Positions 38,815 through 58,600 of a DNA stretch of 64,000 bases are shown piece by piece. Under the pieces are notes generated by a model. That model saw nothing but the letters and a program-made list of their open reading frames with translations. It ran no database searches and was not told the DNA's origin. A program made the position numbers and the translations under genes. This stretch comes from Antechinus flavipes. Taxonomy: Eukaryota. Where the stretch lies: contig NC_067399.1 in the NCBI RefSeq assembly GCF_016432865.1, forward strand, positions 42,842,001 through 42,906,000. The letters are read 5' to 3'. Within the stretch, counting starts at the first letter, position 1. Each line of letters starts with the position of its first letter.

Positions 38815-39807
38815 ATGCCTGGGGATCACCGGCGCATCCGCGGGCCCGAGGAATCGCAACCGCCTTCGCTGTACGCGCTGCCGGGCCAGGAAGACGACGA
38901 CGATGAGGGGGAGGCCGGAGCGGCTGGGCCCCGCGATCCCGCGCGGCTGCGACCGGTATACGCGCGTGCCGGTCTGCTGAGCCAGGCCAAGGGCTCGGCC
39001 TACCTAGAGGCCGGCCGCACCAAGGTGCTGTGTGCCGTGTCCGGGCCGCGGCCGGCCGAGGGGGAGCGCTCGGGGGCGGCGGCGGCCGGCGCGGGCGGCC
39101 GCCTGGTGTGCGACTTCCGGCGGGCGCCTTTTTCGGGACCGCGGCGGCGGCGGCCGGGAGGTGCGGGCGCGGGCGGCGGCACGGAGGAGCGCGAGCTGGC
39201 GCTGGCAATGCAGGAGGCGCTGGAGCCCGCAGTGCGCCTGGGCCGCTATCCGCGCGCTCAGCTCGAGGTGTCGGCGCTGCTTCTGGAGGACGGCGGCTCG
39301 GCACTGGCCGCCGCGCTCACGGCCGCCTCCCTGGCGCTGGCGGACGCGGGCGTCGAGATGTACGACGTGGTGGTGGGCTGCGCACTGAGCCGCGGCCCGG
39401 GCCCCGACGCCGCCTGGCTGCTGGACCCCACGCGCCGCGAGGAGGAGCGCGCCGCCGCCGGCATCACGGTGGCGCTGCTGCCCGTACTCAACCAGGTGGC
39501 GGGCCTGCTGGGCAGCGGCGAGGCGGGCGAAGCGGAGAGCTGGGCGGCCGCCGTGCGCCTGGGCCTCGAGGGCTGCCAGCGCCTGTACCCCGTGCTGCAG
39601 CAGTGCCTGCTCCGCGCCGCGCGCCGAAGGGGTGAGGCGGCGGCGCCTGGCCCAGGCCCGGCCCCCGCCGCGCCCGGACCTGCCGATGCTGCCGCCGCCG
39701 CCGCGCCCTCCCGGACCCCCTCCGAGGCTGCTGCTGCTGCTGCTGCTGCTTCCGCCGCCGATGCCAACGCCATGACCCTCGACCCAGCTGGGGACTTGGA
39801 GGCCTGA
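38815..39807 (+). CDS. EXOSC6: Exosome complex component MTR3, intronless, 330 aa
   Basis: [17 protein letters not shown]...[24 protein letters not shown]...[20 protein letters not shown]...[13 protein letters not shown]; RNase PH family. Downstream of AARS1 in the same orientation as in human. The ORF-track start at 38506 is an upstream non-ATG start. Confidence 0.97.
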
Positions 39808-40274
39808 GTGCCCCCATCGGGAGGGAGGAGGACCCATCCCCATCCTCCTTGTCACCTCCCTCCTCCCTCTCCCCAGAATGGCAGCAGTCCTGCCCCCCTG
39901 CTGCCACCCCTTCCCCTCACCCCCAGGCGATGGACCAAGGCCTGGGCATTCAGGAGCCCCACCCACCCAACCCCACTTCCCCCTCCCCCTGACCTGCTGC
40001 AACCCCGACCCACTCGAGGCTGCCAACACTGGTGCAAAACCCCTCCGGCCTTGACATCTTTCCTCCCCGAGGCCTGGGGGGGGTGGGGAGCGGCACCGGC
40101 CATCACCGGCCTCCTCCTCCCCAGCGATCCCCAAACCTGTTCTAACCATCACCGCCCACCCCCAATCCCCTGCAGCGGCCTCAGGACCCCCACCCTGCAA
40201 GTGCCTTCCTACAAGTGACAGACTTTGGGGGGACAGTTGCCTTTGGAGCCACGGAGCCATTTCTGTATATGTTG

Positions 40275-57673: not shown

Positions 57674-58600
57674 GCCAGCCCGCGGGGGGCCCGCCGGGTG
57701 CCAGCGAGGGGCGAAGCCGCCGCCGCCGCTGCTGCTGCCGGCCGTGGCCGTGGCCCGGGGCGGCGGGGGTGCGGCTCTAGGCTCGCTGCTGCGCCCTCGG
57801 CCCCGGCTCACTGGCCCAAGCCCAAGCCCCTCGTCCTCCGCCGCCGCCGCCGCCGCCGCCGCGTCCTCCCCGCCGCCGCCGAAGCCCCCCCGGCGGGGCT
57901 GAGCGCGGGGCCACTGGAACGTACCATGTCCCCGGCGGGCGCGGGGGAGCGCGGCGGCGCGGGGCGGGGACACGAGGCGCCCCACCTCGGCCGCGCGCGG
58001 GGGGGGCCGCCCGCCGCGGGGCTTCGGGCCCGGGGACATGGGACAGCCGCCGAGCAGCGCGCAGGGAGGGCGGGGGCGGCGGGCGGCCTCCCTCCTCCCC
58101 CTCCTCCTCCCCCTCTTCGCCTCCCCTCCCCCGCGGCGGCGGCGGCCGAGGCTCGGCCCGAGGGGCGGAGCTCGGGGAGGGGGCGGGGCCAGGCCCAAGC
58201 TCCCGGGAAGGGCGGGGCTGCCCGCGAGGAGAGAAGAGCGAGCGGGCGGGCGGGGGCCGAGCGGTTCGGTGCCTCCCTCGTGCAGACACCTGCGGGCACT
58301 CACCTGTGCGTGCGTGCGTGCTCCGCCGTGCCTGGGGAGAGACCCGCGCGTGCATGCACTTATGCCTGCTTCCGTGCATCCTGGGCACAAGCGTGCCTAT
58401 TCAGATGCTGCACGCGCGAGCGCCGTCTCTGGGGCCACGCCGGCCTCTCCTCACGCGTGCACATCTGCTTCTCGACGCGACGCCCCCAGGCGCAGACTTG
58501 CCCACCCGGGAGGACACGAGCTTGTCCGCGCTATGAACGCCCATGCATTTCCCTGCCCATTTCTTCCGGGTAGGATAATCTCGGTGTGCATATATAATAA
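57150..58600 (-). promoter_or_regulatory. Large CpG island: promoter, 5' UTR and first exon of the RALY-like gene
   Basis: Very high GC and CpG content, GC boxes, (CCG)8 at 57838-57861. Confidence 0.75.
57637..57673 (-). CDS. RALY-like gene, putative first coding exon (MTLFGSEEACRR+T)
   Basis: ATG in CpG island, donor T|GTGAGT; phase 1 matches the next exon (T+AT = Tyr). Confidence 0.6.

Follow-up and report, generated by a model that had tools for sequence, protein, structure and literature searches.

In the literature, the family of heterogeneous nuclear ribonucleoprotein (hnRNP) C is treated as comprising HNRNPC, RALY and RALYL together with primate retrocopies (PMC11288931; PMC4042849), and RALYL, RALY and HNRPC have been listed as a single family of ohnologues from the two rounds in which the whole genome doubled (2R; PMC4042849). 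When deprived of its RNA recognition motif (RRM), hnRNP C is still tetrameric and binds long RNA as well as the wild type does; tetramers require the zipper, and binding requires the basic region (PMC9943658). Here we describe, in a window of 64,000 nucleotides from the genome of Antechinus flavipes (contig NC_067399.1, positions 42,842,001 to 42,906,000; positions below are counted from its first letter), an hnRNP C-like gene that has no RRM and for which, together with its clade of relatives, we use the shorthand X. Judged from its sequence, X is in effect a natural 'delta-RRM' hnRNP C, composed of a DLDY linker, a basic region, a zipper, an acidic tail and a C-terminal peptide. The interpretation that we favour, and consider reasonably probable, is that X is the fourth ohnolog of HNRNPC, RALY and RALYL, reduced to an RRM-less unit with a zipper-based mechanism of RNA binding. 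Such a fourth lineage, extending from fishes to mammals, would complete the expected set of four.

The X gene lies on the minus strand, where reading of the DNA together with mapped marsupial models delimits a coding part running from 57673 down to 42032. The gene comprises seven coding exons and six introns with GT-AG borders throughout and consistent phases, and its product has about 211 residues. The exons, including an alternative first exon, are as follows:

57637..57673, minus strand, exon 1b (first coding exon): MTLFGSEEACRR plus one base; donor GTGAGT
58304..58379, minus strand, alternative first exon 1a: MHGSRHKCMHARVSPQARRSTHART; donor GTGAGT; prediction only
49032..49110, minus strand, exon 2: (Y)LDMARDPKGSRARPGQKRQHSATLY; homologous to the RRM-end/linker of hnRNP C/RALY (LDINLAAEPK / INMAGEPK)
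44327..44377, minus strand, exon 3: SNCDLNYELYREDFPY; DLDY motif of the linker region
44055..44200, minus strand, exon 4: VYEYQRIPPLINRAPVKSRR...VRTK; basic region
43843..43956, minus strand, exon 5: zipper helix LRAEELHSIKGELSQIKAQVDSLLESLERMDQRRDRLG
43011..43174, minus strand, exon 6: acidic Ser/Glu-rich region with DSAEESTDTEEA at its end
42032..42070, minus strand, exon 7: MKNHTSDPDGSQ and stop codon

An intron-containing gene of hnRNP C/RALY type had been proposed for the interval 38815-58600 in a first-pass annotation of this window; the gene is present, although strand and borders needed correction, as it runs on the minus strand and the first 1 kb of that interval belongs to the neighbouring EXOSC6 (38815 being the A of its ATG), towards which X is convergent. 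The NCBI model of Antechinus flavipes (P0002) is 100% identical to the window across X exons 1 and 2, prolongs the open frame upstream of exon 1b to an ATG at 58039, and uses an alternative donor of exon 6 located 6 bases further on (43005). The N-terminus encoded by exon 1b recurs in birds, crocodile, turtle, platypus and teleosts, and in a transcript contig (L006, described below). Exon 1a, which has 92% identity in tblastn with P0001 and is used by predicted isoforms of Sminthopsis and Petaurus, was not seen outside marsupials. At the other end of the gene, the acidic stretch of exon 6 closes with a conserved DSAEESTDTEE, and polyadenylation-like signals follow the X stop at 40985 and 40649.

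No part of the window encodes an RRM. Motif scans found no RRM motif in any of the six frames of the whole window, and with six family RRMs (from lamprey, hagfish, RALYL, RALY and HNRNPC) as queries, tblastn gave a best E value of 0.67, with no match inside the X gene. None of 99 X homologues carries a Pfam domain, the only match for the exon-bearing frames of X itself was to BLOC1_2, on the helix and below threshold, and the transcript contig is likewise without an RRM. In the alignment, the start of X exon 2 coincides with the end of the last RRM strand of hnRNP C/RALY (LDMAREPK vs LDINLAAEPK and INMAGEPK). Among the features that define the family, X has the zipper helix, the acid-free basic region, the acidic C-terminal region and a place inside the family tree, and lacks the N-terminal RRM_1.

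For the zipper, a profile built from 16 X orthologues matches only PDB 1TXP, the tetramerisation domain of hnRNP C (E 2.4e-5, residues 114-139), and X keeps all seven core hydrophobic positions of the 1TXP helix. In the AlphaFold2 model one helix is confident, spanning residues 107-141 with a predicted local distance difference test (pLDDT) score of 93-98; elsewhere the chain is predicted to be disordered, and the mean pLDDT for the protein is 59. The 40 residues preceding the zipper hold 9 K/R and 0 D/E in Antechinus, and 8-10 K/R with 0 D/E in nine of ten amniote X copies (the snake copy has 2 D/E), compared with 10-12 K/R and 0 D/E in hnRNP C, such that the basic region is slightly weaker in X. 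The tail of X is acidic, with Ser/Thr in a Glu-rich context.

With HNRNPC, the nearest clade in both core trees described below, X has in common the 1TXP-type zipper, the DLDY motif, the acid-free basic region and the acidic Ser/Glu-rich tail. It differs from HNRNPC in having no RRM and hence no uridine-tract recognition, in its conserved KNHTSDPEGSQ tail, and in its site beside AARS1 and EXOSC6. RALY resembles X as a member of the family and in its exon logic downstream of the RRM, but carries the RRM, its zipper is of the GRLEQI type and the mammalian protein contains a glycine-rich insert; a clade of X and RALY is rejected. HNRNPCL1-4 are young intronless RRM-containing primate retrocopies of HNRNPC, whereas X has six introns, no RRM and, in all likelihood, an origin earlier than bony vertebrates.

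The match to 1TXP, the predicted helix, the basic region and the behaviour of hnRNP C without its RRM together suggest that X is a tetramer-forming protein that binds RNA independently of sequence. By analogy with hnRNP C, its zipper would form four-helix oligomers, on its own or together with hnRNP C, RALY or RALYL, and its basic region would bind RNA without sequence preference, so that particles containing X would be without the uridine-tract targeting that the RRM gives. Stable tetramers that bind approximately 230 nt of RNA would be predicted from the behaviour of the delta-RRM mutant of hnRNP C (PMC9943658). We put this mechanism forward tentatively, at somewhat less than an even chance. 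With only its tetramer-making and sequence-independent RNA-binding parts, X would offer a natural experiment on the contribution of the RRM.

Several lines of evidence establish X as a gene under constraint. In platypus, crocodile and lizard the full set of seven exons was recovered in the right order; in elephant, six were recovered. Relative to Antechinus, the ratio of replacement to silent substitution rates (dN/dS; 181-203 codons) is 0.16 in platypus, 0.23 in elephant, 0.08 in crocodile and 0.10 in lizard. The zipper exon differs from that of platypus by 2 replacement and 11 silent changes, and EELHSIKGELSQIKAQVD plus the subsequent LLESL is identical from snake to marsupial. X is thus intact and under purifying selection. 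In addition, a Logan contig of 1058 nt (L006, from SRR12656981, squamate-like) holds the complete X coding sequence, uninterrupted and with all exons joined; it contains the junction between MTLFGSREACWRH and LDMAREPK, extends to the stop, and has an in-frame stop 40 codons upstream. Since the contig carries these exons joined and without an RRM, an RRM-less X mRNA exists, unless the contig represents a retrocopy. We are nearly certain that X is a real functional gene.

A search that used the zipper exon as query yielded 99 proteins, approximately 205-220 amino acids long and named 'RNA-binding Raly-like protein' or 'hnRNP C-like', which span marsupials, platypus, birds, crocodilians, turtles, squamates and placentals, and an exhaustive profile search for X gave 328 matches. 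Models from placentals cover more than 15 genera in total, among them elephant (Elephas; 269 amino acids, between CLEC18 and EXOSC6), Dugong, Trichechus, Dasypus, Sciurus, Castor, Chinchilla and Lepus, with further models, recovered as clusters, from Rhinolophus, Phyllostomus, many felids, Ursus, Capra and Otolemur. RRM-less relatives were also found in teleosts (zebrafish si:dkey-234i14.2), lungfish and coelacanth, and teleosts and amniotes each hold HNRNPC, RALY and RALYL besides X. A search with a profile of the fish members, which was overwhelmed by serine-rich words, returned only teleosts and lungfish. The searched literature contained no paper on si:dkey-234i14.2 or on a fourth member of the hnRNP C family. 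In many genomes the names given to X are misleading, and the gene appears not to have been described in that literature. The misnaming is systematic: the databases contain hundreds of entries that bear the name 'RNA-binding Raly-like protein' and yet are not RALYL.

Within this distribution, models from muroids (hamster, lemming and others) and from macaque (LOC114674302) are without the DLDY exon (P0099, P0121, P0123, P0126, P0130, P0115). The zipper is nearly intact in the muroid models, some of which are also without the acidic exon, and is less well kept in macaque, which suggests a lineage-specific reduction of X in macaque and muroids, not simple loss. No human or mouse protein of the X clade was present among the database matches. 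Given this reduction and the lack of human and mouse matches, chicken, opossum, zebrafish, and cat or dog cells are suitable systems for the study of X. Additional copies were observed in two groups of fishes. Coelacanth (Latimeria) has two different genes of the X clade (P0235/P0124 and P0153/P0328), one of which pairs with the lungfish gene while the other branches basal to that pair, neither grouping with tetrapods. Cypriniforms possess a second, less diverged copy of X (Myxocyprinus P0203).

The alignment used to place X within the family covers the region that every member has; it begins at the exon-2 motif and extends 38 residues beyond the start of the zipper. A first tree (45 sequences, 140 columns, IQ-TREE LG+C20, rooted on lamprey and hagfish) resolved an X clade (support 98/94) separate from the clades of HNRNPC (100/99), RALY (100/99) and RALYL and containing amniote, teleost, lungfish and coelacanth genes, and joined HNRNPC with X (96/77) and RALY with RALYL (96/93). 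A second tree of 56 sequences, to which sharks, paddlefish, bichir and more RALYL sequences were added, recovered the X clade (93/83) and the same pairings (HNRNPC+X 86/72, RALY+RALYL 98/93); in this tree lamprey and hagfish no longer fell on one side of a branch, leaving the rooting unsure. In the 45-sequence set, approximately unbiased (AU) tests rejected a grouping of X with RALYL (p 0.015) and likewise one of X and RALY (p 0.012), and in the set with sharks a grouping of X with bony RALYL was again rejected (p 0.009). Sequence relatives in teleosts, lungfish and coelacanth date the X lineage to the last ancestor common to bony vertebrates, or earlier, and a fourth lineage older than bony vertebrates is highly probable. 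The view of the first-pass annotation that the gene is ancient, and not a recent marsupial duplicate of RALY or RALYL, is therefore borne out.

Cartilaginous fishes contributed a single kind of family gene to these analyses, a RALYL-like one. The shark gene has an RRM, a RALYL-type acidic tail and a span of 665 kb (in sawfish), yet is placed near the root of the core tree; a RALYL+shark grouping was not rejected (p 0.12), and a tree of RRMs only did not resolve its position. The chondrichthyan RALYL proteins (P0329-P0346, P0344) carry an hnRNP C/X-like zipper ending, LLDSLDRMEKQRK, where bony RALYL and RALY have GRLE(K/Q)I. Either GRLE(K/Q)I arose twice, or it was copied between two genes, or else the shark gene is no plain RALYL orthologue.

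The genomic setting of X was compared across five amniotes. In the window, its neighbours are:

38815..39807, plus strand, EXOSC6: single exon; Pfam RNase_PH, E 1.1e-30; convergent with X
28412..33693, plus strand, 3' exons of AARS1: 73-93% identical to elephant AARS1 exons

The stops of EXOSC6 and X are 2.2 kb apart. The gene order is CLEC18, X, EXOSC6, AARS1 in elephant, X, EXOSC6, AARS1 in platypus and sand lizard, and X, AARS1 in crocodile, and in all four species X has the same orientation as in Antechinus, tail to tail with EXOSC6/AARS1. X thus stands beside AARS1/EXOSC6, genes of human 16q22, in five amniotes, and the synteny check that had been proposed for platypus and lizard finds it retained in both. 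The adjacency of AARS1 and EXOSC6, given in the earlier description of the surroundings, is confirmed by the Pfam and exon matches; the DDX19 that was said to precede them was not verified in window positions 1-13 kb. CLEC18 had been named as the next gene after EXOSC6 in human and mouse; in elephant X lies between the two, and no CLEC18 exon was found in 58.6-64 kb of the window. Two rodent models (P0125, P0127) consist of CLEC18 (CAP and lectin domains) fused to the zipper half of X, and are probably read-through predictions across adjoining genes.

A further connection concerns RALYL, for which an RRM-less isoform is predicted in which an alternative first exon of 13 residues is spliced to the INMAGEPK exon. 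This first exon reads MTMYKSKRRNQRY in bony vertebrates (the frog Xenopus, turtle, Antechinus and vole) and MTLFKSKRRNQRH in shark, and for the first exon of X the sequences are MTLFGSEEACRRY (amniotes), MTLFKSEHRSPRY (teleosts) and MTLYKNEHHSQRH (coelacanth), such that the first exons of X and of the short RALYL isoform form a series of similar sequences, all joined to the equivalent next exon. The C-terminal peptide behaves similarly, the sequences being KNHTSDPEGSQ (X), NNHTSDTSDTQ (shark RALYL), ENHVSDIDN (bony RALYL) and SHTCDLDGIQ (lamprey). Both the shared first exon and the C-terminal peptide look like ancestral features. The RALYL isoform has the same succession of parts as X, namely the short first exon, the INMAGEPK/LDMAREPK exon, linker, basic region, zipper, acidic region and NH.SD peptide. 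It differs in coming from a gene of several hundred kb that produces an RRM form besides this isoform, whereas the RRM-less protein is the sole product of X, a compact gene of 16 kb, and in the ending of its zipper (LLGRLEKIEKQ vs LLESLERMDQ in X). In Antechinus, RALYL and X are on different chromosome-size records (727 Mb vs 686 Mb). We propose that an internal RRM-less unit would predate the duplications of the family and that the X paralogue would have retained that unit alone, in which case the RRM-less isoform of RALYL would be ancient and not annotation noise.

Taken together, the separate X clade and its position beside AARS1/EXOSC6 fit a fourth ohnolog of the 2R family of RALYL, RALY and HNRPC; the clade has both ray-finned and lobe-finned/tetrapod members, and X is neither a retrocopy nor a tandem copy. 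The relevant paralogon is 8q/14q/16q/20q, marked by NDRG, MT-MMP, JPH, CPNE, WWP1/WWP2/ITCH and CHD6-9. Within it, NDRG2/NDRG4 and MMP14/MMP15 pair 14q with 16q, and NDRG1/NDRG3 and MMP16/MMP24 pair 8q with 20q; WWP1, WWP2 and ITCH lie near RALYL, the X locus and RALY, respectively. That X is a product of 2R itself we judge slightly better than an even proposition.

A number of observations weigh against this interpretation. In zebrafish and American shad, X has on one side a fibulin-like gene, which contains a Sushi domain, and on the other urah, followed by a TDRD9-like gene or TMEM67, and is not near aars1/exosc6. Microsynteny therefore backs orthology within amniotes only, and with no neighbours shared between teleosts and amniotes, the orthology of the teleost genes rests on 141 aligned columns and the shared motifs. 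Among the named matches, neither cartilaginous fishes nor amphibians contributed an X orthologue. The deep branching becomes unstable once shark RALYL joins the tree, where AU tests do not reject X+shark (p 0.21) or X+RALYL+shark (p 0.096), and the lobe-finned fish sequences of X, including the two coelacanth copies, are misplaced relative to the species tree. The characters also conflict: the first exon and NH.SD tail favour RALYL or the ancestor, the core tree HNRNPC. Oligomerisation, RNA binding and a nuclear location are all properties that we infer for X from its resemblance to hnRNP C. The earlier proposal of a fourth 2R ohnolog is consequently upheld as regards a separate, old lineage and its synteny among amniotes, while the 2R step itself remains a hypothesis.

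Instead of 2R, a segmental duplication that took place later, early in the history of jawed or bony vertebrates, may have produced X, either from the internal RRM-less unit of RALYL or from HNRNPC, with the copy landing by chance near AARS1. Such an event would account for the first exon and C-terminal NH.SD peptide common to X and RALYL, which are closest in shark RALYL, and agrees with the X+RALYL+shark grouping not being rejected and with the lack of a shark X orthologue among our matches. It accords poorly with the rejection of X+bony RALYL (p 0.009-0.015), with the pairing of X with HNRNPC and of RALY with RALYL in both core trees, which is the symmetric pattern expected from two rounds, and with the 16q22-like block, which is where a fourth ohnolog would be expected to lie; we regard a post-2R origin as unlikely, though it deserves to be taken seriously. 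It is more doubtful still that the amniote and fish genes are not orthologues and reflect independent losses of the RRM, brought together in the trees as fast evolvers, which would make the amniote gene a novelty of the tetrapod or amniote stem. The teleost and amniote copies are without common microsynteny, long branches meet inside the X clade (as flagged in the second tree) and no amphibian copy was seen; however, the X clade has a support of 93-98%, its members share a Y-[DE]-Y-Q-[RK]-[IV]-P motif, the MTLF first exon and the LL(E/D)SL(D/E)RMD zipper ending, and teleosts separately hold RALYL, RALY and HNRNPC. The teleost gene was also considered as a late copy of RALYL, which is rejected: teleost RALYL already has the derived GRLEKIE zipper.

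Two further explanations have very little probability. The first-pass annotation had envisaged an ancient ohnolog that marsupials retained and that placentals lost or allowed to decay, for which the shortened macaque and muroid models, some without the DLDY exon, and the lack of human or mouse proteins among the matches might be adduced. For placentals as a whole this idea has to be abandoned: an intact eutherian orthologue already annotated, which the first-pass annotation had itself set as a refutation, exists in elephant, where it lies in the same synteny, as do full-length models in dugong, beaver, hare, chinchilla, bushbaby, cats, bears, bats and goat. Equally improbable is a decaying or non-functional locus strung together by annotation from chance similarity; most of the protein is indeed predicted to be disordered and has no Pfam match, but such a locus would not be expected to combine dN/dS values of 0.08-0.23, exons in order across distant genomes, a spliced transcript contig and the identity of EELHSIKGELSQIKAQVD between snake and marsupial. 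Three other candidates are rejected, namely a recent marsupial duplicate of RALY/RALYL (by the separate clade, the AU tests and the amniote-wide synteny), a retrocopy or tandem copy (by the six GT-AG introns and the location of RALYL on a different chromosome-size record), and a pseudogene (by the low dN/dS, the intact exons and the spliced contig).

Returning to X as a fourth ohnolog, a more far-reaching scenario can be outlined, which we offer as a speculation that is rather unlikely to hold in full. The RRM-less unit, whose first exon is of the MT(L/M)(F/Y)K type, would be older than 2R, and one ohnolog would have been kept solely as such a unit for more than 400 million years, as an RRM-free subunit that would co-assemble through the zipper with hnRNP C, RALY or RALYL and tune the selection and measuring of RNA by hnRNP C-type tetramers. 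Decay of X in catarrhines and muroids would then explain its neglect.

The remaining observations concern the upstream end of the gene and the window as a whole. Both first exons lie within a region of high G+C content:

56000..59000, no strand assigned, GC-rich island: 62-71% G+C; contains exons 1a and 1b

This island is presumed to be the promoter of X. On the minus strand, the frame is open from the MTLF start through 57674-58039 up to the ATG at 58039 (MSPGPKPRGG...). Parts of this Pro/Arg/Gly-rich extension (MSPGPKP.RG, GTFQWP, PRWH) recur in platypus, elephant and dugong models, and the elephant and dugong models have a valine in place of the MTLF methionine. The upstream start may be used in mammals, or else the extension may be a conserved GC-rich leader sequence. 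Elsewhere in the window, a run of 508 N at 6487-6994 marks an assembly gap or masked stretch. Lastly, the stretch at window positions 42000-44450 is contained in four runs, and approximately 15% of the words sampled from it occur in 18 runs of another organism, some of them metatranscriptomic, and these shared words may represent a conserved or repeated piece.

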